64,000 nt of DNA from Phyllobates terribilis. Its lineage: Eukaryota. The notes beneath the pieces are model-generated. The model was given only the letters and a program-made list of their open reading frames with translations. It had not been told where the DNA came from and searched no databases. Shown here piece by piece: positions 335 through 47,710 of the stretch. Position numbers and translations under genes: made by a program. Every line of letters starts with the position of its first letter. Positions within the stretch are counted from its first letter, which is position 1. Location: the NCBI RefSeq assembly GCF_046119375.1, contig NW_027362772.1, forward strand, positions 72,788,001 to 72,852,000, given 5' to 3'.

Positions 335-700
335 AAACACAATTTGAAGTCAAGATCTATTATCGTAGCAATCTGGTGAAGAACACCTTGGTGAGGAACT
401 CAAATGGCTTCCACATCACTTCAAGTAAACAGCCAAATCCCGAAAGTTATTTAGAGGATGTGACGTTGCCCCCACCCACCATGATACATGACCAAAAAGC
501 AGCTGCTGAAATAACTAAAATTCTAGACAGCCTAAATCCGGGCACAATGATTGAAGTGCGAGACGGGTCAATATGTGCTAAAAGGCTGGGCAAGTGCCGG
601 AGCTTCTGGACAATGACGGACGAGCCAACTACAACTCAACCCAGTCCTATAAGCAAAACAGACTATAACGTTCTGTATAACTGTCAAACATTTGTGAAAG
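335..700 (+). CDS. irf3: IRF3-like paralog A, IAD (IRF association/SMAD-FHA-like domain) exon; upstream exons lie outside the window
   Basis: Acceptor ttttctatag|, donor AAAG|gtatga. Encodes TQFEVKIYYR...ICAKRLGKCRSFW...LYNCQTFVK, which aligns with the human IRF3 IAD (FEVTAFYRG...QRLGHCHTYW). Confidence 0.92.
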
Positions 701-2053
701 GTATGATCTTGACTCTTTTTCATGAATATTGATTAAGAATGGTCACATTTACTACATGTATGTGCGCGTCAATAAAACGATTGGTTTCGACCAGTCCAAA
801 ATCTTATTTTTAGGAAAAACAGATATAGGTCTTATTTTGTAGTAGTAATCCTACTGATCATAATGCAAAAAATACTATTAAAGGCAACCCGTTACCAGGT
901 CAAAAGTGGACAGTTTTTTGTTCTTTTCTATTCCCGCTGTTCCTCTGAGCATTCCGTTTTTTGTTTTTCTTAAATTCGTCGTACGGTTCCAGAGATATAG
1001 ACCTTTCTATTTAGTGCTAATTTTTATAGTCTGTATCAAGGGGGCGTGGCTCACAGGATAATTTATGCAGAGCAACCTAAACACACGCCCAAGAGGAACC
1101 TGTGAGACACGCCCCCTTCCTAAAAACCAGGCTAAATAAAAATGCCAATATCTCTGGAACTGTTAGACGGGTTTTAAAAAAACAAAAACTGGAATACTCA
1201 ATGGAGCGGCGGGAATAAAACAAGATAAAAAATGACCACATTTGAGCCCTTCTTAGGCCACGTTCAGTATTTGGTCAGTATTTTACTTATGTCTTTCTAT
1301 TATACTTTTCCTTTAATTTTTCCACTCCTGATATTGGCTTACAAATACTGATATAAGATACTGAATGTGTGAACATGGCCTTAAAGTAACATTTAAGTTT
1401 CTTTGTTGTATATAAGTCTGGAAAAATTGTCTGACAGCGAGTATGGTCATCATTATGGTACGTACAAAGGTTGTCACCCAACATTCTGGGAGTCCTGACC
1501 ACCCTGCCTAGTCGTACCACAAGCATCAGCCTTGGTGGAATAGCAATGATGGTCACTGATACAAGTTACCTCTTTTGATTTTAGAAGAAAAATTGTAGGA
1601 GAAAATTTTAGATTTATTTCTGTAAAGTTCTAAAGTTTAAAGGATTTTTCTAAAATCTAGGTGGATTTCAAATATCCCCTAAACCATGCAGAGCATAAAG
1701 GAATAGTCGTCAAAAACACTCCAGTGACATCACAATGTTACATAACCAAACAGTCAATCATGGCAGGGGCCTGTGAGCGCAACACTACAACCTTGTGCCA
1801 TGATTGGCTGCTATCGTCATATGAGATTTCAAGCTAATGTGATGTCACTATCTGTAGATCCAGGTTAGACAATGGCATTTATTCTCTTACTGTGATTATT
1901 TTTGAAGTTTTTTCATTTATTGATGTTGTGCATAGTATAGGGGATTTCCAAGTTTCACTCAGATTTTGGGAAACCCCCTTTTAAGTGTTTTTTTTTGTTG
2001 GTTTTTTTTTAATTCTAATATTTTTTTTACATCAATTGTCTTTTTCTTTTCAG

Positions 2054-2172
2054 AACTAATTGAGTTCATAGAACAAAAGAGGAGAGAATCTCCTCAATAC
2101 TCCATTTGGATCTGTTTAGGGGAATTTTGGCCGGATGGAAAATCTTGGAAAAAGAAGTTCATTATGGTCCAA
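2054..2172 (+). CDS. irf3: IRF3-like paralog A, penultimate coding exon (119 nt)
   Basis: ttttcag| ... CAA|gtgagt. Encodes ELIEFIEQKRRESPQYSIWICLGEFWPDGKSWKKKFIMVQ, matching IRF3 SPRYALWFCVGESWP...KRLVMVK. Phase is compatible with the neighbouring exons. Confidence 0.93.
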
Positions 2173-2528
2173 GTGAGTTTCCTACCTGTGAAACTGTCGG
2201 AATTTACAATATATCAGTATAGTATTTAACCTAATGGGGATGTCGGCCATTATTTTCCTTTAATTGAGTTGAACCTATTTTTGGTTGTATTGCTTTCCTC
2301 ACAATTCACACTCTCTGAGACCCAAAACTACCTCAAAAACAGGGGCCCCATCCTCGTATCTCATGGCAACTGTCAGCAAAGAGGTGGCAGTGCATGTGCT
2401 TCTCTTTCCTTTTGAGTCCTTTGGAAGTTCCCATAAAACTTCCAGAAACATCAATGAAGGGAGCTGCACATGCACGACCACCTCTTCACTGATAGCAGCT
2501 GTGAAACACAGGATGGATTATGCTGTAG

Positions 2529-3435
2529 TTGTGTGGAATCCATTATACTGTTTGGAGGGCTATTTGGAGTATCATTATACTGTATGTGGGCCATTATACT
2601 GTGTGGAGGGTTGTGTGGGGTCCATTATACTATGTGGAGAGTTGTGTGGGGTCCACTATACTCTGTGGAGAGTTTTGTGGTGTCCATTATACTATGTGTA
2701 GGGTTGTGTGGGGTCCATTATACTCTGTGGAGAGTTTTGTGGTGTCCATTATACTATGTGTAGGGTTGTGTGGGGTCCATTATACTCTGTGGAAAGTTGT
2801 GTGGGGTGCATTATACTATGTGGAGAGTTGTGTGCGGTCCATTATACTATGTGGAGGGTTGTGTGGGGTCCATTAAACTCTGTGGAGGGTTGTGTGGGGT
2901 CCATTATACTATGTGGAGGGTTGTGTGGGGTCCATTATACTATGTGGAGGGTTGTGTGGGGTCCATTATACTATGTGGAGGGTTGTGTGGGGTCCATTAT
3001 ACTATGTGGAGGGTTGTGTGGGGTCCATTATACTATGTGGAGGGTTGTGTGGGGTCCATTATACTATGTGGAGGGTTGTGTGGGGTCCATTATACTATGT
3101 GGAGGGTTGTGTGGGGTCCATTATACTATGTGGAGGGTTATGCAGGGGCCATTATACACTGTAAGGTTGTCTCAGATCCATTATACTGTTTAGAGGGCTA
3201 TGTGGGATATCTTTATACTGTTTGGAAGGCTGCTGGGGGCCATTATACTGTGTGGAGGGTTGTGCCGGGACTATTATATTATGTGGAAAGTTGTGTGGGA
3301 GCCATTATACTGTATGGAGGGCTGTGTGGGGGCCATCATATTGTGTCAAGGGCTATATGGGGGCCATCATACTGCGTGCGCGGGGATTGCGGGGGCTATA
3401 ATACTGTGTTGGGTCCACTGTGGGTTATCATACTT
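2529..3435. repeat. 31-bp minisatellite (CCATTATACTATGTGGAGGGTTGTGTGGGGT)n, about 28 copies, intronic
   Basis: Period 31 (copies at 2901, 2932); degenerate at both ends. It explains the repetitive ORFs at 2470-3468. Confidence 0.95.
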
Positions 3436-3805
3436 TGCGGGAGGGGGGTTACTTTAGGGTCATCATAGTGTAGGTGTGGAGGAACTCACTGTTTGGGTGT
3501 CTTACTGTGTTTGGGGGACACATTTGTTGCCATCCTACTTTATGGGGGCTATGAAAGTGGTATCTTAGTGTGTGGAAACGCTAAGGGGCTTCAACAGGAG
3601 CAAAATGAATTTGTAAGGGCTGCTCTTCTGTGACCCCGTTGAATATTTTTTTTTTGTTGGGAGGGGCAGATATCGATTTTTAATTTTAGATGCCTAAAAG
3701 TAACTTAAAAAAATTAGTTGTAAAGGCGGAAATGGCCTTTAAATTGACTAGCGACTAAAATAAGACTATTGAATGTTACTTTACAATCTTCTTATTTTTT
3801 TTTAG

Positions 3806-3976
3806 ATCACACCAATCTCAATGCAAATGCTACATGAGATGAGTTACAACATCGGAGCCTCGTCGTTACGCAGCAGTGAGGTCAACCTGCAAATCTCCGA
3901 CTCTCTGTCTCTGCACAGTACGAGTGATCTGCTGACTTTTCTTAAAGAGTTTGAAGAAAGGATGGAGTGTTCTTAG
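3806..3976 (+). CDS. irf3: IRF3-like paralog A, last coding exon (regulatory serine-rich tail)
   Basis: ttttttag|ATC...TCT TAG. Encodes ITPISMQMLHEMSYNIGASSLRSSEVNLQISDSLSLHSTSDLLTFLKEFEERMECS*, with GASSL (human S385/S386) and the pLxIS motif NLQIS (human DLHIS, S396). Confidence 0.93.
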   Translation: MTPISMQMLHEMSYNIGASSLRSSEVNLQISDSLSLHSTSDLLTFLKEFEERMECS

Positions 3977-4129
3977 AAACGCACAAGCTTGATCTTCCAC
4001 CGAGAGGAAAGAGACACAGAACTTAATCAGCGGTGTATCAATTTGCAAAATAGGACCACACACTGGCATCAACTGTACCTCAAACTTATTTCAACAGAAA
4101 ACGATAGGATAGGTGAAACTGTAAGTGTA

Positions 4130-4380: not shown

Positions 4381-4410
4381 TACAAATTATCACCAATCTT
4401 TGGGATGGAT

Positions 4411-26821: not shown

Positions 26822-26825
26822 ACTT

Positions 26826-26844
26826 TGGCGTAGTCGGCAGGATT
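26826..26844 (+). other. Primer-binding site complementary to tRNA-Ser 3' end
   Basis: TGGCGTAGTCGGCAGGATT is the reverse complement of the vertebrate tRNA-Ser(AGA/TGA) end ...AATCCTGCCGACTACGCCA; it starts 5 nt after the LTR. Confidence 0.85.
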
Positions 26845-27272
26845 TCGTGCCCGCAACCACCGGGTACTGCGTGCCTGAAAAAGAGACTTTTATACTTACC
26901 TGTGGTGAAGTTTCCCGCAGTCCGGAGTCGTTTCCCGCCATCCGGAGCCGATTCCCGCCATCAGACGCCATCTTGGACCGTTTCCCGCCGTCTTCTGCCT
27001 TCTTCCCGCCATCCACAGCTGCTTCCCGCCTTCGGACGCCATCTTCGGGACGCCGCACAGGAAGAAGAGGGGCGTGGACGCCGAAAGCGCGCGAGATCCG
27101 AAGCTCCGCCCCACACAGTGACGCTGCGCAAGGTCCTGGAAGGGAGGAAGAGCGACGCTGACGTCATCGGAGCGCGACGCCAGGTCCTCAACCCCGACGA
27201 TCGACTGCGGAGCCGCGGCCTACGGAAGAAGAGCATCGCAAGGTAGGCCACGGTCCACTAGGGGGGAGGAGG

Positions 27273-28256
27273 ATGCCGGACACCGAGGGGAGCTCCACTG
27301 CCACAGCCACCGCCAGCGCAACCGCTGCGGCAGTCATGCCATTCACCATGCCCTATATCCCGGGGGCAGCCTGGCTACCCCAGTACTCAGGGGAATCACA
27401 TACCCTAAATGACTTTAGAGAAAGACTGGATAGCCTCTTCCAGGTGTACCCCCTCACAGAAGAGCAAAAAGTGAGCATCCTGGTGGCCCAATTAATCGGG
27501 GCAGCCCAAAGGGAGGTAAAGTCCTGACCACTTGGGAGGAAGAGGACTGTCAGAGAGATACTAGCCCGGCTGAAAGACACATTTGACACCCGCACCTCAG
27601 CCGAGATAAAGCTCAGATTTTACGGGTGCAAACAGCGAGCACATGAGAGTATAAGAGACTATGCTTTAAACTTACAAGAGGCCCTGAGAGCCATTAAGCA
27701 GGCAGACCCTGACAGCGTGGGAAATGAAGATAAGCTGTTGACTGAACAATTTATTGAGGGTCTACTATGCAATGCCCACCGAACCCAGTTGCGGGCAATG
27801 GCCTTACAGGGCCCTGACCTGGACTTTGCACAATTCAAGGACAGAGCCATCCGGGTGCTCCGAGAACCGGCACCAGGTGGCGCTGTGACCCACAGGCACC
27901 CTGCTATCACTTACCACCAGGGGACGGCGCCCTTGTCTGCAGAGCCTGTGGGAGCTGATGCGCAGGCTTTAAACAGTGACCCGGCTACAGACCTGCACCA
28001 TCAGGTCCAAGAGCTGACTAAGAGCGTTGCCGCGCTAACCAGAACTGTGCAGTCTTTACAGGTCTCTTCTCCAGGAAAGATCCAGCTGGCATCCGGACCG
28101 GAGGACGTCCCGTGGCGCCGACTGAGGAGGACCCCACCGGCCAGAGGAAGACCCAGCGACAGATACAACGAGGATGGACGACCCATCTGCCGCCGCTGCA
28201 ATCAACCCGGACATGTGGCAAGGTACTGTCATTTAAACGGGCACAACCTGGGGTAG
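27273..28256 (+). pseudogene. gag: Outer Gypsy gag with one premature TGA (27525-27)
   Basis: ORFs 27273 and 27717 are in the same frame, separated by EVKS*P (likely TGG>TGA). C-terminal CCHC knuckle CRRCNQPGHVARYC. Confidence 0.85.
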
Positions 28257-28290
28257 AGGGCCAACCCCCAGGCATAAGACCATCAGGCCC
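28232..28290 (+). promoter_or_regulatory. -1 ribosomal frameshift signal (slippery heptamer plus predicted pseudoknot)
   Basis: T TTA AAC in the gag frame at 28232-38; 8-nt spacer; stem 1 CCTGGGG (28247-53)/CCCCAGG (28266-72); stem 2 GGGCC (28258-62)/GGCCC (28286-90). Confidence 0.7.
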
Positions 28291-28359
28291 ATCAAACTGG
28301 CGTGATAAATACGTAGGGGGACGTCCAATCTTGCCTGTGGTGGACTGGATGGCATTCCT

Positions 28360-31300
28360 ATGAGTGCCCTACTAGACACCGGGTCACAGGTCACCACCAT
28401 CCCGTACGTGCTCTTCAAGCAGTACTGGAATGACTCGGACATAACCCGCTACCCAGATGACGACCTGAGTATCATCGCCAGCAATGGTCAGCCCGTGCAG
28501 CAGGTGGGATTCAAAAAGGTGACCATTAAGATCGGTAAAGTCGAACTGGCGGCACAAGGACTGATAATAGTGGACATAGACCGTCATGAGAGTCACCCTA
28601 GAATAACCTTGGGAACTAATGTGATTGAAAATTGTCTTGCAGAGGTGATTCTCATTTTACAGCAGGTTGCCAAGAACGCCAGTTCCGGCCAGCAGCGTGT
28701 GCTCCAAAAAGAGATCCGGGCACTGATGAAGCGGCAACAGGTGGAACTATCTGGTGGTGAGATAGGTAGCGTGAGAATGTGTGACCCGTTCCCTATTGCC
28801 ATGCCCCCAAAAAGTGAGATGATGATTTGGTGCCGGGCAGCTATTGGTCTAAGAGGTAGAGACTACCAAGCAATGGTAGAACCCGTCTACTCAGACAGTA
28901 GGCCCACCATTTTGACAGCACGGGGGGTGGTCGATGTACGCCATGGGAGGGTGCCCGTTCGCATCATAAATATCGGGGAGAGAGAAGTATACCTGCCCCG
29001 GTATGCCACGCTAGCCAAATTGTTCACCATAAACCAGAATTCTGTACAGGCCGTGGAACCCTTGCCTCCATCTCAACCAGAGGAAGGTAACGGCTCTAAG
29101 AAACCAATGGAGGACTGGTGTCAGCAACTGCATTTGGGTACTGACTCCACTCCCTCACACCAGAAACAGGGAGTCTATCGGGTGGTTCGAGAGTACGAGA
29201 GAGTGTTTAGTAAACACCCGCTAGACTTCGGGCGAGTAAAGGGGGTAGAACACCACATCCCCACGGGAGACCATCCTCCCATAAAGGAGAGATACCGACC
29301 CGTACCCCCGGCACACTACCAACACGCCAAGGGGATGCTTAGAGACATGAAGGAGGCTGGGGTAATCAGGGACAGCTGTAGCCCCTGGGCAGCTCCACTA
29401 GTCTTAGTGAAAAAGAAAGACAACACCATGAGAATGTGTGTAGACTACAGGAAGGTCAACCGTATCACACACAAAGATGCGTACCCGTTACCAAGGATAG
29501 AAGAGTCCTTAGCTGCATTAAAATCTGCTCACTTCTTCTCTACTTTGGATCTCACTAGCGGGTACTGGCAGGTTCCTGTAGCAGAGACGGACCGGGAGAA
29601 GACCGCATTCACCACCCCGATGGGTCTCAGCGAATTTAACTGTATGCCGTTCGGGCTCTGCAACGCACCAGGAACCTTCCAACGGTTGATGGAATGCTGT
29701 CTGGGACACCGGAACTTCGAGACGGTCCTGTTATACCTGGACGATGTCATCGTCTATTCCAAGACCTACGAGGACCACCTGAAACACCTGGCAGAAGTGT
29801 TTGAAGCTCTGGCAAACTACGGCCTAAAGGTGAAACCCTCCAAGTGTCACCTCCTGAAACCAAAGGTGCAATACCTGGGACACGTGGTGAGTGCTGACGG
29901 AGTGGCTCCCGACCCTGATAAGATCACTGTGATTAAGGACTGGCCAAGACCCTCCAGCATAAAGGAAGTGCGGCAGTTCCTCGGGTTGGTAGGCTACTAC
30001 CGAAGATTCATTCCCGGTTTCACCAAAATGGCAGCCCCTATGCAGGACCTCCTGATAGGTCAATCTCGGAAAGCCAAAAACCAGAAGCCGCCCTTCAGGT
30101 GGGAAAAGCTGGAAGAGGAGTCCTTCTGCCAGCTGAAGATGGCCCTCACGGGGGATGAAATCCTGGCATATCCAGACTACAGCCAGCCCTTTATCCTCCA
30201 CACGGACGCAAGCAACATCGGGCTAGGAGCCGTACTGTCCCAGATCCAGCAAGGGAAAGAACGGGTAATCGCTTACGCCAGCCGAAAGCTACGGCCCACG
30301 GAGAGGAACCCTGAGAATTATAGCTCATTCAAGCTGGAGTTCCTGGCAGTAGTGTGGGCAGTGACCGAACGTTTCAAGCATTACCTTGCCTCCTCCAAAT
30401 TCACCGTGTACACGGATAACAACCCATTGACACACCTGGACACTGCAAGGCTCGGTGCCCTGGAACAGAGATGGATGGCCCGCCTGTCCAACTTTGAATT
30501 CACCATCAAATACCGGGCAGGACGCTCAAATGCCAACGCGGATGCCCTGTCTAGAATGCCGAACTTACCGGACGTAGGGGAAGATCCAGAAGATCTGGAA
30601 GAAGTCGAGCTCCCTGCATTCCACCGTCATGGGATTACCCTGTATTCCCACCGTGTGAAGGACAGGCGCTCTGTGACGTTCAATCCCTTGCCCCACTACA
30701 ACTGGGCAGAAACGCAAGACAGTGATCCCGCAGTCCGTCTGGTGAAGGAAATGCTGACCCAAGCCGATGCCAGTCTTGACCCAGACGCTCCGGAGGAGAC
30801 CAAGCAACTGTGGAAGGAGAAAAGTAAGCTGTTCCTCTACAGGGAGAAGCTGTGCCGGAGAATGGTTAACTCTCGAACACATGAGTTGACCTGGCAGGTA
30901 GTGGTCCCAAGACGAGACGCGGCTATGATCCTGGAGGCATACCACAACGGAGCAGGGCATTTCGGATGGAAGAAGCTGGAGTTCTTGTTGCGTGAACGGT
31001 TCTACTGGGTAGGCATGAGAGGAGCCATCGAGAGGTGGTGCAGAGACTGTGGCCCGTGCCACCTGAGAAGAAAGGACCGTGCCAGCCAGAAGACTCCCTT
31101 GCAGCCCATCATCACCAGACAGCCACTGGAACTGGTAGCCCTGGACCATGTGAAACTGGCTCCAAGCAGATCTGGGTATGTCTACGCCCTCACAATCGTA
31201 GATCATTACTCCCGGTTCCTGGTGGTGGTCCCGGTCAAGGACTTAACAGCTCAAACAGCAGCTAGAGCCTTCCAGCAGCACTTCTGCCGTCCACACGGGT

Positions 31301-32370
31301 ACCCGGACCAAGTGCTGACAGACCAAGGGCCAGCCTTTGAAGCGGAGGTCTTCCAGGAGTTCTGCAACCTGTATGGCTGCAAGAAGATAAGAACAACGCC
31401 CTATCACCCTCAAACCAATGGACTCTGCGAGAAGATGAACCAGGTGGTGATAGATCTGCTAAAAACATTGCCCCTGGAAGAACGCAGTCTGTGGCCTGAG
31501 AAACTGCCCGATCTGATGGACGTGTATAACCACATCCCTGTAGGTTCCACCAACTGTACCCCGGCTTACCTAATGAGAGCGAGACCTGGTAAGCTGCCTA
31601 TTGACCTGGATATGGGAGTCCTGACACCTGAGGACACCTCGCCAGAGGCAGACTGGGATACAGAACGGCAGCAGCAGTATCGGAAAGTACAGGAGAGCGT
31701 CGAGCAAAGTCTGTCTCAAGCTAGAGAAAGGCAAGAGAAGGCTTATAACCAGTATGCTCCCGCTGTTCCCCTGGTACCTGGAGAGCAGGTCTTGAAGAGG
31801 AAGAGGCGGCTCCACAAGTTGGACGACCAGTGGGAGAAGGACCCGTACACCATACTGCCATCAAGCCATGAGAACCCAAAAATCTGCGTAATCAGTAAGG
31901 ATGGAGGAGAAACCACAGCCATTGTCTCCAGAGACCACCTGAAGAAGTGTCCCGAGCAGCTGCAAAGCCCTGAAGAAGATCAAGAAAACCCTCAACCCGC
32001 AGAGGAAAGGGAAGAAATGATCAGTACCGTACTCGGAGACTTCCCCCGGTCTTGGACACAAGTAAACGGCGCTGTCGTGGTACCCGTCCTCACCTTTCTC
32101 CAGCCAGCCCCGCAAGTGCCTACAGAGGAACCGGTAGAGCTGGAAGAGCAGCCGGCCCAAGAGGCAGAAGAGTCCACACCAGCAGTACAGGAGGATCAAC
32201 CCTCTGCTAGTAGTGAGCCTGCCGTGCCCCTAGTGAGCCAAAGAGTGCGCAGAAAGCTGCCCAGCTTGCCCATAACACCTCCTACACCCTGTAGTGCAGA
32301 ACCAGTTAGTGAGCTCCGTAGGTCCACTAGAGTCACTAGAGGTCAGATGCCCGCTCGCTGGAGAATCTAA
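28360..32370 (+). CDS. pol: Outer Gypsy pol polyprotein (PR, RT, RNase H, integrase), open for 1336 aa but out of frame with the gag-pol fusion
   Basis: LLDTGSQ (protease), YLDD (RT), LHTDAS (RNase H), HNGAGH...CGPC (IN zinc finger), LDH/TDQG/E core; no chromodomain. Confidence 0.93.
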   Translation: MSALLDTGSQVTTIPYVLFKQYWNDSDITRYPDDDLSIIASNGQPVQQVGFKKVTIKIGKVELAAQGLIIVDIDRHESHPRITLGTNVIENCLAEVILILQQVAKNASSGQQRVLQKEIRALMKRQQVELSGGEIGSVRMCDPFPIAMPPKSEMMIWCRAAIGLRGRDYQAMVEPVYSDSRPTILTARGVVDVRHGRVPVRIINIGEREVYLPRYATLAKLFTINQNSVQAVEPLPPSQPEEGNGSKKPMEDWCQQLHLGTDSTPSHQKQGVYRVVREYERVFSKHPLDFGRVKGVEHHIPTGDHPPIKERYRPVPPAHYQHAKGMLRDMKEAGVIRDSCSPWAAPLVLVKKKDNTMRMCVDYRKVNRITHKDAYPLPRIEESLAALKSAHFFSTLDLTSGYWQVPVAETDREKTAFTTPMGLSEFNCMPFGLCNAPGTFQRLMECCLGHRNFETVLLYLDDVIVYSKTYEDHLKHLAEVFEALANYGLKVKPSKCHLLKPKVQYLGHVVSADGVAPDPDKITVIKDWPRPSSIKEVRQFLGLVGYYRRFIPGFTKMAAPMQDLLIGQSRKAKNQKPPFRWEKLEEESFCQLKMALTGDEILAYPDYSQPFILHTDASNIGLGAVLSQIQQGKERVIAYASRKLRPTERNPENYSSFKLEFLAVVWAVTERFKHYLASSKFTVYTDNNPLTHLDTARLGALEQRWMARLSNFEFTIKYRAGRSNANADALSRMPNLPDVGEDPEDLEEVELPAFHRHGITLYSHRVKDRRSVTFNPLPHYNWAETQDSDPAVRLVKEMLTQADASLDPDAPEETKQLWKEKSKLFLYREKLCRRMVNSRTHELTWQVVVPRRDAAMILEAYHNGAGHFGWKKLEFLLRERFYWVGMRGAIERWCRDCGPCHLRRKDRASQKTPLQPIITRQPLELVALDHVKLAPSRSGYVYALTIVDHYSRFLVVVPVKDLTAQTAARAFQQHFCRPHGYPDQVLTDQGPAFEAEVFQEFCNLYGCKKIRTTPYHPQTNGLCEKMNQVVIDLLKTLPLEERSLWPEKLPDLMDVYNHIPVGSTNCTPAYLMRARPGKLPIDLDMGVLTPEDTSPEADWDTERQQQYRKVQESVEQSLSQARERQEKAYNQYAPAVPLVPGEQVLKRKRRLHKLDDQWEKDPYTILPSSHENPKICVISKDGGETTAIVSRDHLKKCPEQLQSPEEDQENPQPAEEREEMISTVLGDFPRSWTQVNGAVVVPVLTFLQPAPQVPTEEPVELEEQPAQEAEESTPAVQEDQPSASSEPAVPLVSQRVRRKLPSLPITPPTPCSAEPVSELRRSTRVTRGQMPARWRI

Positions 32371-33413
32371 ACCAATGCACTGTAAAGTTGACTGTTTATT
32401 GAAAAATGTTTATGGTTTATGTTTGTTGCCTGTTACTAATTATGTTTCTCAGCTACCCTGCAGATTTTTATGGACTAACAGGTTATGGACACTGGATAAC
32501 CGGAACAGTTTTGTAGATAGTTGCACCTTGGTGCCTCTTGTGAAGACGGCCGCGGAAGAGAAAACCTGTCTGGCGTGGCCTCATTGCGGCCCAAAGTAGT
32601 TAGTCTACCCTTGCAGCCACGCCCAAGGACAACGCAAGGGGTTTGCTTTGGACAGGTCCCCTATTCTGTGCCAAGACTTCGCCTTGTTGGGTGATATGGA
32701 CACCCGGTCACGGAAACGCCGTGACCTCTACAGACTAAAGCTTCTTGTAAATATGTTGTCTTGTTATTGTTATACCTTGTATTTATGTTTCTTTAAAAAA
32801 AAAAGAAAATGTGTTTAGTCCCGGAGTACTAAAATTTACTAGGGGGGAATGTGACACCCCAGGGGTCTGGTTGCCACAGTAATAGAGATATTATGTCTGA
32901 GAGCAAGTGGGAGGTTTCTCTGGTCAGGATCCCTAAGCATGCTGTTAGAACCTTGCTGTTAGGTTTTTTTTCCTTTGCTGGTCACATGACCTTGTTGGCC
33001 TATTTAATCCTGCTCCGCCCTTCTGGCTTTGCTGGACTTCATTGTATATCTACTTTCTAGCTAGCCTGTGCTCTGTATCTATCTCTGTTAGTTTGCTTGG
33101 TCTACGGACCTCTATGTTCTATCTATTTTGTTTGTTCGTCTGTCTGCTACTATTTCTGTTAGGAGGTGTCCCATATTCCTTCCAGTCCTTAGTACTTGTA
33201 GGGATTCCCTCCCCACATCTATAGGTCTTCGTACAGACTAGATTAGGACTTTAGCAGGTCTGATCGCAGGATCAGGTTCCCTGTTACATCGTAGGGATTC
33301 AGCTGAGTCCTATAGTAGGGACAGATCTCCTCTCTTTCCTTAGCTTTGGTAGCAGAACATAACAGTAAGTCCAGCCTGCAAATTCTCTAAGGAAAGATTT
33401 TTTTTGTTCCATC

Positions 33414-34253
33414 ATGGTGTCGGTTCAGGATTTGGCTAAACACCTGCAGGGACTCTCTCTGGAAGTGGCCGAGCTCCGTCAGCACGTGAGTAACTGTCCT
33501 GGAGCATATTTCTTGGAGCCTAAGGTATGTTTGCCGGATTTATTTTTTGGTGAACATCGAGAATTTTTTTCATTTAAAAATGCTTGCTTATTGTATTTTC
33601 GTTTGAGACCCAAGTCCTCTGGGGATGAATCCCAGCGCGTAGGGTTCATAATGTCACTTTTGCGCAAAGAGCCTCAGGAGTGGGCCTTTTCTTTGCAACC
33701 TAGTGATACATGCTTCAGATCAGTGGATAGTTTTTTTTCTGCTTTAGGACTATTATATGATGATCCTGACCGTGTGGCATCAGCTGAGACTGAGTTGAGA
33801 CGTTTAAAGCAAGGATCAGGTAATGTGGAAAAATATTGTACTCATTTTCGTCGTTGGTCCACTCAAACAGGGTGGAACGATTCTGCTCTGAAAAGTCTAT
33901 TTCTTGCTGGGCTCAGTGAAAGGGTTAAAGACCTGCTAATTGCTTATCCTACACCTGAGGATTTGCAACAGGCTATGCAATTAGCTATACGGGTGGATAG
34001 AAGACTGCGTGCTAGGGTTAATGAGAGCAAATCCTCTGCTATGTCAGTTTCTGGTTATGATAATGTGTGTACTAACAGTGGTGAACCAATGGAGATTGGA
34101 TCGGTGGCACCTCGCTCTCAAGAAAAAGACCGTCGTTTTTCGGAAGGCTTGTGTTTCTATTGCGGAAAATCTGGTCATTTGATTAAAGGCTGTGAGCTTC
34201 GTATGAAGAAAGAAAAAAAAAAATGGTCAGTCACGCCCGTATTGCCTGTTTAA
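33414..34253 (+). CDS. gag: Inner element Gag (retrotransposon gag domain, CCHC knuckle)
   Basis: FSFKNACLLYFRLRP...LKQGSGNVEKYCTHF...EPMEIG...CFYCGKSGHLIKGC; typical Sushi/PEG10-like Gag. Confidence 0.92.
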   Translation: MVSVQDLAKHLQGLSLEVAELRQHVSNCPGAYFLEPKVCLPDLFFGEHREFFSFKNACLLYFRLRPKSSGDESQRVGFIMSLLRKEPQEWAFSLQPSDTCFRSVDSFFSALGLLYDDPDRVASAETELRRLKQGSGNVEKYCTHFRRWSTQTGWNDSALKSLFLAGLSERVKDLLIAYPTPEDLQQAMQLAIRVDRRLRARVNESKSSAMSVSGYDNVCTNSGEPMEIGSVAPRSQEKDRRFSEGLCFYCGKSGHLIKGCELRMKKEKKKWSVTPVLPV

Positions 34254-37200
34254 ATTCCAAGGGTATATTTTTAGCTGCTTCCACGATTGCTCAGGAAAAA
34301 TTAATGGAATTTCGGGTGTTTGTTGATTGCGGGTCTACACTAAATGTAATTGATGGGGGATTCGTGGAAAAACTCAATTTAAAACCTGAACCTTTATCAT
34401 CCCCCATTGCTGTGGTTTCTGTGGATGGCTCCCCTTTGAAGAATATTACTCTCAAGGTCAGTGAATTTCCTCTCACTATTAATGGTGTTCACCATGAGAA
34501 ATTGGATTTGGTAGTGTTGAATAACTTGCCTTCTCCAGTAATATTGGGTTTGCCCTGGTTAAAATTTCACAATCCTGTACTGGATTGGTCTACCAGTGAA
34601 ATTAAATCCTGGAGCCATAAATGTTATGACAAGTGTTGTAACGGGCGTATTGCAGCTTTGGATAGGGGAGAATTGCCTGTTCCTATTCAGGATTTTTGGA
34701 GAGTATTTTCTGAGAAAGAATCGCAGGTTTTGCCTCCCCATAGAGACTATGATTGCTCTATTGAATTTGTCCCTGGAGCGACTCTTCCTAAAAGTCGTTT
34801 ATTTAACCTTACTATTCCTGAGAGGAAGGCTTTGGAGGAATACATACAGACAAGTTTGGCCGCCGGTCACATTAGGCCCTCTAAGTCTCCTGTGGCGGTT
34901 GGATTTTTTTTTGTAAAAAAAAAGGACGGCGGTTTACGTCCTTTTCTGGATTTTCGTGAGATTAACAAAATTACGGTACGCAATCCTTACCCACTGCCAT
35001 TGATTCCTGATCTGTTTAACCAGTTATTGGGGGCCAAGTGGTTCTCTAAAATTGACCTTAAGGGGGCATACAATCTGTTGCGCATGAAGGAGGGTGATGA
35101 ATGGAAGACTGCTTTTAACACTCCTGTGGGTCATTTTGAGAATCTGGTTATGCCTTTTGGTCTTACTAATGCTCCTGCATTTTTTCAGAATCTGATTAAT
35201 GACATCCTTAGACCTTTGATCGGTAAAAATGTGGTTGTGTATTTGGATGACATTTTGATTTATTCGCCAGATCTGGAGTCTCATTGGCGGAGCGTGCGTG
35301 AGGTATTACAGTTATTAATGGACAATTCGCTTTTTGCTAAGCTGGAGAAATGTGAGTTCGCTGTACAGAGAATTAGTTTTTTGGGCTACATTATCTCCAG
35401 CAAAGGTTTTGAGATGGATCCGGTTAAGGTTCAGGCTGTGCAGGAATGGCCTAGGCCTATTGGTTTGAAATCGATACAGAGGTTTTTGGGTTTCGCCAAT
35501 TACTATAGAAAATTCATAAAAAATTTTTCTAGTATTGTCAAACCTCTGACTGATCTCACCAGGAAAGGTGCTGATGCGGTTCAGTGGTCTTCTGAGGCCA
35601 TTGAAGCTTTTGTGTATCTCAAGGAGAGGTTCACCTCTGCTCCCATCCTTATGCAGCCTGATGTTACTAGGCCGTTTTTGGTTGAGGTTGATGCTTCCTC
35701 TGTGGGGGTTGGCGCAGTATTGTCTCAGGATAACGGGGATGGATTACATCCCTGTGCCTTTTTTTCAAAAAAATTTTCGGAGACTGAATTGAATTACGAT
35801 GTTGGTAATCGGGAATTATTGGCTATTAAACTCGCATTTGAACACTGGCGCCACTTCTTGGAAGGTGCGGAATTTCCCGTTCAGGTTCTTACGGATCATA
35901 AAAATCTGATATATCTTGATGCTGCCAAGCGCCTGAATGCCTGTCAGGCTAGGTGGGCACTGTTTTTCTCGCGGTTTAATTTCTCCGTTACTTACATCCC
36001 TGGTACTAAGAATGTTAAGGCGGATGCCTTGTCTCGCAGTTTTTCTCCCATAGTCGGTGCTGAGAAAGAGGAAAACATTTTACAAGGTGTTGTGATAGCT
36101 GCTTTAGACTCCGTTTTGGAAGATGAGATTCTTAAAGCTCAGGAGAATGCCCCATCTAACACTCCTCATGGGAGGTTGTTTGTGCCTGGGACCTTTAGGA
36201 GAGATTTGTTTGTTGAGTGTCACGAATCTCGGTTGGCAGGTCATCCCGGAATCTCTGAGACCAAGAGACTGGTGGGTCGCAGTTTTTGGTGGCCTGGATG
36301 GCAGAAGGAAGTCATTAAGTGGGTGCGCCAATGTACTATATGTGCTAGATCTAAGTCCTCACATACTCCTGCTGCGGGGTTGCTTTGTCCTTTGGAGGTC
36401 CCCAGTGCTCCTTGGACACATTTGGCTATGGACTTTATAACTGACCTTCCCCCCTCTGAGGGTTTTACTGTCATCTGGGTGGTCGTGGACCGTTTTCGCA
36501 AGATGTGTCACTTGGTTCCCTTCGTCAAACTGCCCTGCGCTAAAACTCTCGCTAAGACCTTTGTCAAAGAAATTGTCAGACTTCATGGCGTTCCTACTGA
36601 CATTGTTTCTGATAGGGGTCCTCAGTTCGTGGCTCGTTTTTGGCGTGCCTTTTGTGACAGGTTGGGAATTCATTTGTCGTTTTCGTCCGGATATCATCCT
36701 GAATCTAATGGCCAGACAGAAAGGAAAAACCAGGATGTTGAGCAGTTCTTGCGTTGTTTTGTGGCAGACAATCAAGAGGGGTGGTCTGAGTTTCTGCCAC
36801 TTGCCGAATTTGCTCTGAACAATCATACATCTTCTTCTGCTGGTTGTTCGCCTTTTTTTTGTTGTTCTGGGAGACATCCGTCGTTTGGGTCGTTCTCCAA
36901 GTTGGGATCTGCCGTGCCTGAGGAGGAGAATTTTTCCGGTGATTTGGAAAGAGTTTGGACGGATGTGCGTGGTAATCTTCAGGAGGCCAACAGAAAATCT
37001 AAAGACTACTTTGATAGGAAACGACAGGAGGTTTTGTTCGCTGTTGGTGACATGGTTTGGTTGTCCTCTAGGAATCTGCGGTTGAGGATTCCTTCTAAGA
37101 AATTGGGTCCCAAGTTTGTAGGGCCCTTTAAGGTGCTTCAGGTTGTCAACCAATCTGCTGTTAGGTTGGAGGTTCCTACCTCCTGGAGAATTAATCCGGT

Positions 37201-37480
37201 CTTTCATGTCTCTCTGTTAAAAAAAGCTGTTGTGTCGGATGGTGACGCCTCTGCCTCTGTTCCTCCGGTGGTGGAGGACGGGGAATATGAAATTTCTCGC
37301 ATCCTTGACTCTAGACGGTATAGAGGTAGTTTGCAGTATCTTGTGGCCTGGAAAGGTTTCGGACCCGAGGATAACTCTTGGGTGAGGTCAGATGATGTTT
37401 CCGCGTCCAGACTTATCAGAGCGTTTCACAGGAGATTTCCTGATAAGCCTGGTCCTAGGGGATCCGGAGGATCCTCTTAG
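34223..37480 (+). CDS. pol: Inner element Pol (PR-RT-RH-IN-chromodomain), -1 frame relative to gag
   Basis: FVDCGS protease, YLDD RT, EVDAS RNase H, HESRLAGH...CTIC, MDFI/SDRG/E integrase, GPKFVGPF (GPY/F), chromodomain YEISRILDSR...YLVAWKGFGPEDNSW. Confidence 0.95.
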   Translation: MVSHARIACLNSKGIFLAASTIAQEKLMEFRVFVDCGSTLNVIDGGFVEKLNLKPEPLSSPIAVVSVDGSPLKNITLKVSEFPLTINGVHHEKLDLVVLNNLPSPVILGLPWLKFHNPVLDWSTSEIKSWSHKCYDKCCNGRIAALDRGELPVPIQDFWRVFSEKESQVLPPHRDYDCSIEFVPGATLPKSRLFNLTIPERKALEEYIQTSLAAGHIRPSKSPVAVGFFFVKKKDGGLRPFLDFREINKITVRNPYPLPLIPDLFNQLLGAKWFSKIDLKGAYNLLRMKEGDEWKTAFNTPVGHFENLVMPFGLTNAPAFFQNLINDILRPLIGKNVVVYLDDILIYSPDLESHWRSVREVLQLLMDNSLFAKLEKCEFAVQRISFLGYIISSKGFEMDPVKVQAVQEWPRPIGLKSIQRFLGFANYYRKFIKNFSSIVKPLTDLTRKGADAVQWSSEAIEAFVYLKERFTSAPILMQPDVTRPFLVEVDASSVGVGAVLSQDNGDGLHPCAFFSKKFSETELNYDVGNRELLAIKLAFEHWRHFLEGAEFPVQVLTDHKNLIYLDAAKRLNACQARWALFFSRFNFSVTYIPGTKNVKADALSRSFSPIVGAEKEENILQGVVIAALDSVLEDEILKAQENAPSNTPHGRLFVPGTFRRDLFVECHESRLAGHPGISETKRLVGRSFWWPGWQKEVIKWVRQCTICARSKSSHTPAAGLLCPLEVPSAPWTHLAMDFITDLPPSEGFTVIWVVVDRFRKMCHLVPFVKLPCAKTLAKTFVKEIVRLHGVPTDIVSDRGPQFVARFWRAFCDRLGIHLSFSSGYHPESNGQTERKNQDVEQFLRCFVADNQEGWSEFLPLAEFALNNHTSSSAGCSPFFCCSGRHPSFGSFSKLGSAVPEEENFSGDLERVWTDVRGNLQEANRKSKDYFDRKRQEVLFAVGDMVWLSSRNLRLRIPSKKLGPKFVGPFKVLQVVNQSAVRLEVPTSWRINPVFHVSLLKKAVVSDGDASASVPPVVEDGEYEISRILDSRRYRGSLQYLVAWKGFGPEDNSWVRSDDVSASRLIRAFHRRFPDKPGPRGSGGSS

Positions 37481-39305
37481 AAGGGGGGGTACTGTTAGAA
37501 CCTTGCTGTTAGGTTTTTTTTCCTTTGCTGGTCACATGACCTTGTTGGCCTATTTAATCCTGCTCCGCCCTTCTGGCTTTGCTGGACTTCATTGTATATC
37601 TACTTTCTAGCTAACCTGTGCTCTGTATCTATCTCTGTTAGTTTGCTTGGTCTACGGACCTCTATGTTCTATCTATTTTGTTTGTTCGTCTGTCTGCTAC
37701 TATTTCTGTTAGGAGGTGTCCCATATTCCTTCCAGTCCTTAGTACTTGTAGGGATTCCCTCCCCACATCTATAGGTCTTCGTACAGACTAGATTAGGACT
37801 TTAGCAGGTCTGATCGCAGGATCAGGTTCCCTGTTACATCGTAGGGATTCAGCTGAGTCCTATAGTAGGGACAGATCTCCTCTCTTTCCTTAGCTTTGGT
37901 AGCAGAACATAACACATGCAACACGGTCCGCCCAGACCTGGGAGGGGAGGAATCTGCCCTTATGAACTGGGTCTGGGCGGGATTAGAGCAGTCTGAGTCA
38001 GAGTCAGAGTGAAGCTGCAGACACAGGGAAAGTGAGGTCAGGAGCTCTGGAGGAGCAGTAGCTGAAGTCCAGGGGCTGGAGCTGAGCAGAGTTCGCCCTG
38101 GACGAAGATACTAAAACCGGACACAGGAGTCCGAGGCTGTGGGGACATCCAGGTCCAGCAACAGAAACCAGCCGGCAGGGGATTCCAGGTCCTCTGGCCA
38201 TAGAAGCCCGGAGGCTCAGTCACAGAGAAGGGACCAGCGCCGCCATCCAGGAGCGGAGGCTAACAGAAGGCCCCAAGTCACCAGCCATACGGGTGAGCAC
38301 CACACGGTATACTCAGGGACGTGGGCTACTTGTAACCGCTGATAGCAAGGTAGCCAGGAAGAGTGCAGATAAACGGGGAGGCCTACAACTCCACCTGGCC
38401 AGGGGAACTCCTGCTTGCTCGCAGACTGACCAGGCCCCTTATACTAGCCAGTACTCCCGGGAGGGTCTGCCTTGTACCATCAGTAAAGACCCTGAACTGC
38501 ACCACACGACTCTGTGATTCCTTGCCGCTCCTGCACCATTAGCACTGGGACCCTCAGACCATCACTCCCATCATCTTCCACATTAGCTGCCCTGAGGCAA
38601 TACTTCTCCCGTGGGGAGTCATCCCATACTCAGCTGCGCAACCAACATCAGCCTCAGCGGTCTGCAGCGCAGCGGCGGTCCCCACTGACCGCAATCCACG
38701 GGTGGCGTAGTCGGACACTTATTCCAATACAAATAGACTGCCACTGGTTTGACCACCCTGGGCACGGACCGGGTCACCGCCACACGGAGACTACAACCCC
38801 CAGCATCCCAGCGATCCGGTTCCGGGTATTCCCCCTGCACAGCAGCAGCAGCACAGGCCCAGGGGGCGCGTCACATACAGTGCCTAATCTCATTGTATAG
38901 TCCTATAGAAAGAAACAGTGTAGTCTCACACTCTGCCTATATTATACAGTGCCAAAAACAGTACCATATAGTTCTTAATCCTAAATAGGGCCTAAATAAT
39001 ACCACCATATAGTGCCTAGTCCCATAGTATGGTTGGAAACCATAGACCAGTATCATCCATTTTATACTTTGACAAATAACAGTACCATATAATATTTAGT
39101 CCTAAACTGGGCCTAAATAATACCACTATACTGTGCCAAATAATATGGCAATACAGAACCTAGTCCCATAGTATCATCTCAAACAATGGAACAGTATAAT
39201 ATCATACTGTGCCCATATTATACTGTGCCAAATAACAGCACCATATAATACTTATATTGGGCCTCAATAATACCACGATATGGTGCCAAATAATATGGCA
39301 ATATG

Positions 39306-39666: not shown

Positions 39667-39832
39667 GAATGGGCCATTGCCAGTGGGCGCTACGATCCCT
39701 TGAAGGACCAGCCTGATCCAGCACGATGGAAAAGGAATCTCCGCTCTGCTTTGATTCGGAAGGAAGGAATTCGCATGATTCTAAACCACAGCACAGCTCA
39801 TGCCAATCCGCACAAAATATATGAGTTCATCA
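39667..39832 (+). CDS. irf3: IRF3-like paralog B, DBD C-half exon
   Basis: ctccag|EWAIASGRYDPLKDQPDPARWKRNLRSALIRKEGIRMILNHSTAHANPHKIYEFI A|gtaaga; matches human AWAEATGAY...WKRNFRSALNRKEG...DPHKIYEF. Confidence 0.95.
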
Positions 39833-40415
39833 GTAAGACATCCTTATCAATTGGTTCATTGAGTGTTACTTAGTAATTCCAACTAAAGACGAGGCAGTAT
39901 ATCCTGGAGGGGCTCATCGGAAAGAGGAGGACACCCAGTCCTGGTCACCCCCCATAACATTTGCTATAAAGCTGGTCCCTTGTCTGAGGAACTGTCTACC
40001 AATAGTTACATTTCCCAAACTGTGAAAATGTAACCCTGCCTCTGAGACCACCCAAGAACTGTCCCCCATTTTTGTGACTAGCTTCCTAGATTGTCCCTGC
40101 AGTTGGCAATCATGGCCAAAAAGTTGTGGTAAAGATGTGTAAGGGGAAACAAAAACTAGACCCTTCTATTCTTTGTGGTAAAAACCCGACACTATATTGG
40201 CCGGCCCAGATGGATCTTTGCTATGGGGCCTCTTCTTTTATGTGTAGACCATTGATCTGAGACAGTATTATACTACATCATTCCAACAAGAAGTGCGGCC
40301 CCCTCTAAGTTGTCCCAGCGCATCGTCATTCTTGAGCCCAACTACTGAGCAGTCATGTCTAAGGCCATTGTCCAACCTCCCAAAAACTAACTTCTTGGGT
40401 CTTTTTAAGTTCCAG

Positions 40416-40504
40416 TACGTGGAGCTGCTCCTGTAGGCCAATATGGCACCGCTTCTGCCAACCCAACGTTACCTCCGGCCTCTTCCAATAACCAAGATGC
40501 AACG
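40416..40504 (+). CDS. irf3: Paralog B linker exon (89 nt)
   Basis: ttccag|...ACG|gtgagt; phase 1 to 0; (I)RGAAPVGQYGTASANPTLPPASSNNQDAT. Supported by splice sites and phase only. Confidence 0.7.
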
Positions 40505-42230: not shown

Positions 42231-42282
42231 ACGACTCTTTTTGAAGAACTGGAGGATCTGGATCTTTACCGAGACGAGGAAG
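42231..42282 (+). CDS. irf3: Paralog B 52-nt exon encoding a leucine-rich NES-like motif
   Basis: tctcctttgcag|TTLFEELEDLDLYRDEE G|gtactg; phase 0 to 1. Confidence 0.72.
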
Positions 42283-42409: not shown

Positions 42410-42613
42410 AGCTGTACCTTCCTTATGAAGATTTTAAGGGCGTCCCGGAAGAGATGGATCCCAATAAGTCATTGCTCGCTGAACAAGTACCATACAACGA
42501 TACATCCCCATTACAGGGTGCGGCTGCTGCTTCTGCCATTCCTGTCCTTCCAGAACATGCTCATGCCATCTACAGTGACTCTCCATCATATACAGCAGCT
42601 GGAGTCCACGTTG
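42410..42613 (+). CDS. irf3: Paralog B linker exon (204 nt)
   Basis: aacctgcag|(E)LYLPYEDFKGVPEEMDPNK...AGVHV G|gtaggt; phase 1 to 1; overlaps ORF 42454. Confidence 0.72.
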
Positions 42614-43232: not shown

Positions 43233-43313
43233 AACAAGTTCCGTCCCAGCCAGATGAAGACCAGGAGACTTTCCAACAGAAGATACTTAAACATTTCAGC
43301 TACAATTCATTTC
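43233..43313 (+). CDS. irf3: Paralog B pre-IAD exon (81 nt)
   Basis: ttttttgcag|(E)QVPSQPDEDQETFQQKILKHFSYNSF C|gtaagt; phase 1 to 1. Confidence 0.78.
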
Positions 43314-44305: not shown

Positions 44306-44674
44306 AAACAGATTTTGAAGTCCAAATTTTTTACCGGGGAAAGCTGGTCCAAACATCAATGGTGACAAACGCACCTGGATTCTACATCACCGCTGACCAA
44401 CAGCCAAGTCACGGTGGCTATGTTGACCGAGTCTATCTGCCGCAGCCGGCATCAGTAGTGGTGAATCAGTTATTGACGGAGGCAGTCGGACACCTCCTGA
44501 CAAAGCTGAAAGAAGGGACCCTGGTGGAAGTCCGAGAAGGAATGATATGCGCGAAGAGATTTGGCCTTTGTAGAAGTTATTGGAGTTTAACAAATACACC
44601 AGAACCAAAAACACCGAATCAGATTGACAAAAGAGAGTACTCCATCCTGTACAGCATTTATCAGTTTATTACAG
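44306..44674 (+). CDS. irf3: Paralog B IAD exon (369 nt)
   Basis: tactacag|(Q)TDFEVQIFYRGKLV...ICAKRFGLCRSYW...YQFIT G|gtaatc; homologous to 335-700. Confidence 0.93.
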
Positions 44675-44687
44675 GTAATCAATTCTG

Positions 44688-45468: not shown

Positions 45469-45587
45469 AATTGATTGATTTTGTGGAACGACGGAGAAAA
45501 GAGTCTCCACAGTATTCTATCTGGATTTGTCTGGGGGAACAATGGCCGGATGACAAACCATGGGACAAGAAACTCATCATGGTGAAG
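45469..45587 (+). CDS. irf3: Paralog B penultimate coding exon (119 nt)
   Basis: ggttcag|ELIDFVERRRKESPQYSIWICLGEQWPDDKPWDKKLIMVK|gtgaat; same size and phase as 2054-2172. Confidence 0.94.
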
Positions 45588-45984: not shown

Positions 45985-46460
45985 TCGAGTTAAATACCTT
46001 GTAAAAATCCCTCTGTTCCCCTGAGTCTGACGCTCTTTTCCGTTTTGCTCTGCGTTGTTCCATTGCAGAGATATTCACATTTGTTGCTTTTCGAGCGCAG
46101 TATGTGAAATCTCTGTCTTCTCTAGGGGCATGTGCGCTTTCACCTCTCCCAGACGCTGCCAATCACAGCTCAGAATCTGATCTACCAATCTTATCAGTCT
46201 CGGATGCTACCAAGCTGTGATTGGCAGCGTCTGGGAGGGAGGGATAAAAGTCCACGCCCACAGAGAAGACTCTAAAGAAACACCCATTTGCACTACAAAG
46301 AGAGATTTCACATACTGTGCTCCAAAAGCAACAAATGTGAATATCTCTGCAATGGAGCGACACAGAGCAAAACGGAAAAGAGCGGCAGAATCAGGGGAGC
46401 TTGGGGATTTTGTTTTATAAGATATTTAACTCAAATTTTTTGAGCAAGTGACAAGTCCTC
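45985..46460. mobile_element. Long palindromic MITE, intronic
   Basis: Mirrored arms; the ORF track shows near-identical peptides on opposite strands (45941- and 46217+). Ends are approximate. Confidence 0.7.
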
Positions 46461-46786
46461 TAAATGGAAGTAAAAACAGATTGATCTCTTTTTCTTTAGA
46501 TGAAGTTTCTGGTTTGGATTATATGAGGTAGTATTCTAGATGAGAGTTATTTTGCATATTCTCCTCTGGATATGATAGATTATATTATTTTAGGGTTAGG
46601 ATCAATTACATTAGAATTGTTTGCATCCTTCTGGGATGTATCAATCCAGAGATAAGTGAATCAATCCGCAGGACCCTGGTCCAGCTGCCGCTTTCTGTCT
46701 CCTGGCTTTTCTGGCTCCTCTTTTGCATAACCGGCCTGGCATGACGTATCAAACTAAAAACTCATCCAAAACGAAGAGATCAATTT

Positions 46787-46985
46787 AAGGCGCAGTCAGA
46801 CAACTGTATAACATGGACAATGATCGCATCGCAGTGCACGGACTGGCCGGCGGCTCTCCTAACCTTAGCATGACACCATGTATTTCTATTCAGCTGTCAC
46901 TTTCGGGTCGGAAGAGCCGCCGGCCAGTCTGTGCACTGCGATGCGACTGTCGTCTATGTTATACGGCTGTCTGACTGTACCCTAA
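46787..46985. mobile_element. Short hairpin MITE
   Basis: CAGTCAGACA...GCATCGCAGTGCAC.GACTGGCCGGCGGCTCT is mirrored by AGAGCCGCCGGCCAGTC.GTGCACTGCGATGC...TGTCTGACTG. Confidence 0.7.
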
Positions 46986-47542
46986 AGGCTCTATCAGGAT
47001 CAATTATCCTCCCACGCGCAAAAATTTTGCTTTTATTTTGCTTGTTTTTTTTTCTCTGTATTTAGTTCGCCTCAAAACATGCAATAGCAATTTTTTACTA
47101 ATTATTGAGTTTTTACTGCGTTTTTGTTTCATGCGTCTTTGGTTTAGATTTAAAGCAGCATATTTTTAGTGCCAAAATTTCGGATTTAAAAAAAAAATAA
47201 TAATTTCAGGCACCCTATAGAAGTCTATAGGCAAAAAAAAATCACCAAAAATTGCACAGTTTAAACGCAAAGGGGGCATGAGTTTTGATGAAGGCACTTA
47301 AACTTTGCTTCAACTTTTCAACGCAGATTTTCTGCATGGAAAAATGCATTGTGGGCACATAGCCTTAGATAGATCCCTGCAGGAAGAATAGAAAAAAAAC
47401 TTTCTTGTATCCCCCTAAGTTTTTCTTACTTTTTCCAGTTGGGGTCTAAAAAAACATTATGGGAATATAGCCCTGAGAAATGAGTCCTGCATGGTGTTAA
47501 TGTCCGATATTGTATCAGTAGTCCTTCTTTTGTTTATGGCAG

Positions 47543-47710
47543 GTGACCCCTGTGGCAATGCGACTTCTGCATGAGATGAGCTACAGCACCGGAGCTTCTT
47601 CTCTAAATAACAGCGACATAAACTTGGAAATCTCAACCTCCTTATCCAGCACAAACAACCTGCTGTCACTTCTGAGGAGCATCGAGGACATGATGGACTG
47701 GGAAAACTGA
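47543..47710 (+). CDS. irf3: Paralog B last coding exon
   Basis: ggcag|VTPVAMRLLHEMSYSTGASSLNNSDINLEISTSLSSTNNLLSLLRSIEDMMDWEN*; GASSL and pLxIS (NLEIS). Confidence 0.94.
   Translation: MTPVAMRLLHEMSYSTGASSLNNSDINLEISTSLSSTNNLLSLLRSIEDMMDWEN

Follow-up and report, generated by a model that had tools for sequence, protein, structure and literature searches.

IRF3 is the first-line switch for interferon induction. In mammals the gene is single-copy, and the human protein (PDB 1QWT, 5JEJ and 2O6G) consists of a DNA-binding domain, a linker, an IRF association domain (IAD) and a serine-rich tail. We analysed a stretch of 64,000 nucleotides from Phyllobates terribilis (GCF_046119375.1, contig NW_027362772.1, positions 72,788,001 to 72,852,000 of the forward strand), referred to below as the window and numbered from its first letter. 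It contains two IRF3-type genes in tandem, paralog A upstream and paralog B downstream. The pair very probably reflects a tandem IRF3 duplication that predates the neobatrachian radiation, both copies being kept by purifying selection. The frog proteins are ∼ 31–33% identical to mammalian IRF3. Both have the domain order of the mammalian protein and retain the tryptophan pentad, the WKRNxRSAL recognition helix, the equivalents of R285 and K313, and the GASSL (S385/S386) and LxIS (S396) motifs of the tail; the last three exons of both genes follow one phase pattern. In contrast to human IRF3, A has K/R and B has L/R at the equivalents of H288/H290, and R213 is not kept.

Other described IRF genes offer further comparisons. 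IRF7 shares with IRF3 the type of IAD, a GASSL-like motif and activation by TBK1/IKK, but it forms a separate, older clade dating from before sharks (PMC7066157), which contains neither A nor B. The retained immune-IRF duplicates of teleosts (IRF4a/b, IRF11; PMC2885996) have likewise diverged in sequence or expression; they belong to other subfamilies and stem for the most part from whole-genome duplication, whereas in frogs IRF3 itself was duplicated, locally and in tandem. The single-copy IRF3 of salamanders, caecilians, Ascaphus, Bombina and Discoglossus belongs to the same orthology group as A and B, with one gene per species among those listed, and lacks the derived states of B.

IRF3 is treated as single-copy in tetrapod immunology, yet two very different IRF3 genes have persisted in most frogs for more than 100 million years. 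Frogs are hit hard by ranaviruses, and the pair is a natural experiment in dividing the adaptor-docking, dimerisation and DNA-binding functions of IRF3. We regard it as moderately interesting for comparative immunology and as a useful warning about orthology.

Structure and expression of the two genes

The window is repeat-rich vertebrate DNA with a GC content of 46% and not a single N. It holds the last three exons of paralog A (335-3976), on the same (+) strand as paralog B. The IAD exon of A (335..700; 366 nt, phase 1 in and out, flanked by AG and GT) matched Pfam IRF-3 (PF10401) with E = 3.4e-22 and was 100% identical to the P. terribilis RefSeq protein P0126. It is followed by the penultimate exon (2054..2172; 119 nt, AG/GT; Pfam IRF-3, E = 8.6e-10) and by a last exon of 171 nt including TAG (3806..3976), which carries GASSL and NLQIS. 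Because the first of these exons opens in phase 1, the upstream exons of A lie to the left of position 1. The C-terminal 217 aa of A were 100% identical to P0126, a complete 464-aa protein named by NCBI 'interferon regulatory factor 3-like isoform X2 [Phyllobates terribilis]'. Read from this protein, the DNA-binding domain of A scored 130–139 bits against human IRF3 (139 bits for P0126 against the human DNA-binding domain) and 72–76 bits against IRF7. A minisatellite array (2591-3373) sits in the final intron of A.

Paralog B begins 20.9 kb downstream of A and lies entirely inside the window, from the ATG at 24856 to the stop at 47710 (nine coding exons, 473 aa, + strand). Its start, MSSRKPRIIPWL...PWKH, was found by a motif scan. 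A search of GT/AG combinations gave one solution only, the nine-exon model that reproduces the RefSeq protein P0096, and B was 100% identical to P0096 over 381 aa; three of the linker exons were recognised by comparison with the homologs P0004, P0087 and P0096. NCBI gives P0096 the same name as P0126 and places both on one 324-Mb chromosome.

Coding exon 1 of B (24856..25023), with the ATG, encodes the N-terminal half of the DNA-binding domain (Pfam IRF, PF00605, E = 7e-18). A polypyrimidine tract and AG directly 5' of it suggest an additional non-coding 5' exon. The C-terminal half, with RWKRNLRSALIRK and NPHK, is encoded by exon 2 (39667..39832; PF00605, E = 2e-12), and the tryptophan pentad is complete across these two exons (five Trp). 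The linker is spread over exon 3 (40410..40504, the sole GT-AG solution reproducing P0096), exon 4 (42231..42282, with the joint 42282/42410 present in contigs of four runs), exon 5 (42410..42613, supported by the P0096 match and by transcript contigs) and exon 6 (43233..43313, with the joint 42613/43233 present in four runs). The IAD exon (44306..44674; 369 nt, AG/GT; Pfam IRF-3, E = 7e-18) and the penultimate exon (45469..45587; 119 nt, AG/GT; Pfam IRF-3 match) were both covered by transcript contigs. The last exon (47543..47710; 168 nt including TGA) carries GASSL and NLEIS, and the 3' untranslated region (UTR) extends to at least ∼ 47838.

The initial annotation, made from the letters of the window, had described a pair of deeply diverged IRF3 paralogs, and its structural particulars were exact, although B proved larger than it had described, with nine coding exons from 24856 onwards. 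The last three exons measure 366/369, 119/119 and 171/168 nt in A and B at the positions it had given, all with AG/GT borders. Intron phases are identical in the two genes, with phase 1 on both sides of the IAD exon and phase 0 after the 119-nt exon, and the IAD exons share 50 of 122 residues (41%). Both tails are kept: the six-frame translation contains GASSL just twice, at 3854 with NLQIS after it (A) and at 47591 with NLEIS after it (B). Over the three C-terminal exons together, identity between A and B was 108/215 (50%). The full-length proteins were 49% identical, with values of 64% for the DNA-binding domain, 34% for the linker and 50% for IAD plus tail. Pfam IRF-3 (PF10401) matched both IAD exons and both 119-nt exons, and the best PDB matches of both IADs were human IRF3 IAD structures. 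Beyond the exons of A and B, no further IRF-like fragments were found in the window.

Transcript contigs of four runs were aligned to positions 42000-47900. Each run yielded one contig of 1.4–1.7 kb that joins exons 4–9 of B at the predicted GT..AG borders, which confirms spliced expression of this copy. The contigs of three runs, from the window's own organism and from two studies, had 0 mismatches to B. The fourth run, from a related organism, differed at two coding positions (L183V and one synonymous change), too few for a rate estimate. One B contig reached 605 nt upstream of exon 5, leaving room for the whole coding sequence and ∼ 124 nt of 5' UTR. As to A, 24% of the sampled words of positions 300-4300 were present in runs from these studies and 18% in the related organism. 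The share of 24% matches the 656 nt of A exons plus ∼ 300 nt of 3' UTR, an indirect sign that A is expressed.

Phylogeny, selection and age of the duplication

A maximum likelihood tree of 69 proteins was calculated under LG+C20+F+G4 and rooted on IRF7 of a frog (Leptobrachium), a shark (Stegostoma) and a ray (Hypanus). The IRF3 clade was separated from the IRF7 clade at 100/99, and A and B nested in anuran IRF3; the IRF3 sequences of shark, ray-finned fish, coelacanth, lungfish, amniotes, salamanders and caecilians all branched outside the anuran sequences. The assignment of both copies to IRF3 and not to IRF7 is thus upheld. That one of the pair might be IRF7 or another IRF could be argued from the GASSL motif and the Pfam IRF-3 domain, which IRF7 has as well; indeed GASSL does not tell the two apart, since it is conserved in IRF7 as well (PMC7066157). 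With IRF7 of frog, shark and ray forming the outgroup at 100/99, A and B inside anuran IRF3, and the DNA-binding domain of A scoring ∼ 2-fold higher against IRF3 than against IRF7, we give this explanation next to no credence; the rooted tree and the domain scores rule out an IRF7 identity of either copy. An assembly artefact or uncollapsed haplotype duplicate is just as hard to credit: A and B are only 49% identical as proteins, their synonymous divergence (dS) is saturated, both copies were found in independent DNA and RNA-like runs, and each has orthologs in many genomes.

The neobatrachian sequences fell into an A clade (17 rows) and a B clade (18 rows), each supported at 100/100. The A copy of the window adjoined Dendrobates and its B copy adjoined Ranitomeya. 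Since each clade contains myobatrachoid, ranoid and hyloid species, the duplication dates back at least to the common ancestor of the three lineages.

We estimated the ratio of nonsynonymous to synonymous divergence (dN/dS) by comparing each copy with one transcript contig of another hyloid (L001 for A, L002 for B), at dS values of ∼ 0.4–0.65. The ratio was 0.19–0.28 for the three exons of A; for B it was 0.21–0.24 over the same three exons and 0.30–0.37 over 374 codons. A and B are both under purifying selection. An old duplication retained under selection had been proposed from the window, and the proposal is sustained by clades that span three neobatrachian lineages, by the saturated dS between A and B, by ortholog dN/dS values of 0.19–0.37, and by the fully spliced transcript of B. 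Three outcomes had been named beforehand as refuting it, namely grouping of one copy with IRF7 or another IRF, one copy lacking spliced transcripts, and dN/dS near 1 together with disabling lesions in the upstream exons of A; none occurred.

Tandem pairs are widespread in anurans. In at least 16 species, NCBI annotates a pair of IRF3 or IRF3-like proteins that share a chromosome or scaffold. The pair is present in hyloid and myobatrachoid genera (Rhinoderma, Dendropsophus, Eleutherodactylus, Leptodactylus, Engystomops, Anomaloglossus, Mixophyes and Pseudophryne), in ranoids (Nanorana, Lithobates, Rana, Mantella, Hyperolius and Pyxicephalus) and in the pelobatoids Spea and Leptobrachium; the gene models of Pelodytes and Pelobates fuse two tandem IRF3 copies. 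In Nanorana, A is followed 15 kb downstream by B on the same strand, the order seen in the window. In Spea a slow copy is followed 3 kb downstream by a fast one, again on the same strand, and in Xenopus laevis the locus tags 18036051 and 18036052 adjoin each other.

This distribution bears on how old the duplication is. The tandem duplication may predate the split between neobatrachians and pelobatoids, and we see an even chance that a single event before that split gave rise to both pelobatoid copy 2 and neobatrachian B, which would refine the reading given above. A quick tree joined B, pelobatoid copy 2 and X. laevis 36051 with a Shimodaira–Hasegawa-like approximate likelihood ratio (SH-aLRT) of 97. 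Pelobatoid copy 2 has the B-derived D and R/K before WKRN, LEIS is partly common to both, and the slow-then-fast order on one strand in Spea is that of the window. However, the node uniting B with pelobatoid copy 2 collapsed in the 69-protein tree, where five lineages (pipoid IRF3, pelobatoid copies 1 and 2, A and B) form a polytomy at the base of Pipanura. Independent duplications were not rejected by approximately unbiased (AU) tests, and the shared residues could stem from convergence or gene conversion. Moreover, no second IRF3 appeared among the annotated proteins listed for Ascaphus, Bombina, Discoglossus, Rhinophrynus and X. tropicalis.

The X. laevis protein XELAEV_18036051mg (P0008), the product of a strongly diverged additional IRF3-like gene that adjoins irf3 (18036052mg), is ∼ 42% identical to its neighbour and has the tail LQFS instead of LxIS. 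Its branch is long and its position unstable, with B in the quick tree and in the polytomy in the 69-protein tree. Protein searches, other pipids included, found no close ortholog. It could be a B-type relic or a Xenopus-specific copy.

Several points weigh against a duplication predating the neobatrachian radiation with both copies kept by selection. The 5' exons of A are outside the window, and the intactness of A rests on the RefSeq model; its expression rests on word shares and not on aligned junctions. Each dN/dS value is one pairwise comparison. Beyond crown Neobatrachia the age of the duplication has wide bounds: the AU tests rejected neither A and B as sisters (p = 0.48) nor sister pelobatoid copies from a pelobatoid-only duplication (p = 0.47). 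Finally, the working of the two proteins, as set out below, is drawn by analogy from the established behaviour of mammalian and fish IRF3.

Divergence of B and a possible division of labour

The mean path from crown to tip was 0.542 in the B clade and 0.296 in the A clade, so that B evolves ∼ 1.8 times faster. Columns conserved at ≥ 90% numbered 205 of 451 in A and 132 of 451 in B, and among ten positions fixed differently between the clades, four were derived in B and one in A. Paralog A keeps the states of salamanders, caecilians and early frogs (VWKRN, ALNRK, GKCR and NLQIS), and it is the slowly evolving copy, ancestral in appearance.

The derived states of B concern three regions. Immediately before the WKRN recognition helix, N is changed to D and V to R, and at the end of the helix there is often N to I or R to Q. 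These helix-end changes overlap the human nuclear import signal in its R86/K87 part. In the phosphoserine pocket, the conserved Lys at the H288 position is lost, and in the LxIS motif Q is changed to E. As judged from sequence alignment, the R285 and K313 equivalents of the pocket are kept in both copies and the 290 equivalent is R in both, while the residue at the H288 position is K in A, is L in B and differs among members of the B clade. The phospho-acceptor cluster of GASSL and LxIS is followed by more Ser/Thr in both tails (A, GASSLRSSEVNLQISDSLSLHSTS; B, GASSLNNSDINLEISTSLSSTN). The xPHK motif of the DNA-binding domain varies in both frog clades (D/E/N in A; N/E/V/A/D in B); the window has EPHK in A and NPHK in B.

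By analogy with the known IRF3 proteins, A and B would both be latent cytoplasmic factors that dock on phosphorylated pLxIS adaptors (STING, MAVS, TRIF). TBK1/IKK-epsilon would phosphorylate them on the GASSL/LxIS serines, upon which they would dimerise, enter the nucleus and bind the interferon-stimulated response elements (ISRE) and positive regulatory domain (PRD) elements of interferon genes. It is probable that B took over, or shifted, a share of the IRF3 function (subfunctionalisation). The sites changed in B touch DNA binding and import, phosphoserine recognition, and the motif for docking and dimerisation; a partial division of labour between A and B would be the likeliest outcome, although this is inference only. 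The B-specific substitutions, in the recognition-helix flank, the phosphoserine pocket and LxIS, are compatible with heterodimers or with a split of adaptor or promoter specificity. A possible analogy for A and B is IRF3/IRF7, in which a slow constitutive gene is paired with one that evolves fast.

A different view of the fast copy is that B is not a working activator, being either a degenerating gene or a dominant-negative or decoy regulator of A. Its ∼ 1.8-fold higher rate and fewer conserved columns would fit, as would the variation of the H288-equivalent pocket residue inside the B clade and the 12 kb of LTR (long terminal repeat) elements absorbed by intron 1. Against this, the 473-aa frame is intact over nine exons with canonical splice sites, the gene is transcribed and spliced, dN/dS is 0.21–0.37, and the orthologs of 18 species are intact, their DNA-binding domain, GASSL and LEIS being conserved. 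We consider a degenerating or non-activating B unlikely, a regulatory role without activation keeping a small probability, and favour two retained copies.

More tentatively, B might be, in Neobatrachia and perhaps in all Acosmanura, a third, unnamed member of the IRF3/7 subfamily with a distinct adaptor or promoter preference acquired through its altered recognition-helix flank, phosphoserine pocket and LEIS motif; this is possible but rather doubtful. If true, B might control the intronless type I interferon genes that have expanded specifically in amphibians, or it might be an inducible amplifier or brake acting via A/B heterodimers.

Gene names, neighbours and other features of the window

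BCL2L12 and SCAF1 are the neighbours of IRF3 in amniotes. No flanking gene was found within the window, and no match appeared when the Nanorana sequence that lies downstream of B was compared by tblastx with its counterpart in the window. In Nanorana and Ranitomeya a gene of ∼ 1600 aa lies downstream of B on the opposite strand.

The genes themselves are not new, since the pair is already annotated in RefSeq, but their NCBI names mix the two lineages. The protein labelled 'IRF3' is of type B in Rana temporaria and Hyla sarda, whereas in Bufo bufo and Pseudophryne it is of type A, and the B type of Nanorana is named 'IRF5-like'. Studies that use one 'IRF3' per amphibian can therefore mix paralogs. 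A 2020 survey used one IRF3 per amphibian species, and its analysis of the DPHK/NPHK motif is an example of work open to such mixing (PMC7066157). We found no paper describing two frog IRF3 lineages in the open-access literature, subscription journals not being covered. A 2026 study of Quasipaa skin mentions in passing an 'IRF3-like' differentially expressed gene that changes together with Mx genes (PMC13701283).

Intron 1 of B (25024-39666; 14.6 kb) is filled by two nested Ty3/gypsy LTR retroelements (25863..38214, + strand), the outer LTRs of which are 98% identical. The outer element has an intact pol of 1336 aa at 28360-32370 (reverse transcriptase, RNaseH and integrase). The inner one (32942-37791) is a chromovirus-type Ty3/gypsy element with 300-nt LTRs that are 100% identical, an intact gag of 279 aa and an intact pol of 1085 aa (protease, reverse transcriptase, RNaseH, integrase and chromodomain). 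It looks to have inserted very recently, inside the older element. B is spliced correctly although the intron took up 12 kb of retroelement.

A scan of the window for ISREs (GAAANNGAAAS) gave 3 matches against 1.8 expected, none of them close to the first coding exon of B. One perfect ISRE-like core, GAAAGTGAAAC, lies at 10109-10119, within the 20.9-kb spacer that separates the two genes; overall the motif is no more frequent than chance predicts. The spacer also contains CpG-rich patches at 12801-13200 and 15801-16300. Together with the ISRE-like core, these patches are candidates for a B promoter or non-coding first exon.

Besides the array in the final intron of A, large minisatellite arrays are present at 7603-8505, 11521-12475 and 17812-19425; the periods of the four are 31, 34, 33/162 and 373 nt. 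They give long spurious open reading frames in every frame. Finally, minus-strand open reading frames of 771, 356 and 240 aa lie within 58269-63460. The 771-aa frame has matches to reverse transcriptase and RNaseH but lacks integrase, and it therefore probably belongs to a DIRS-like or other non-LTR-integrase retroelement.

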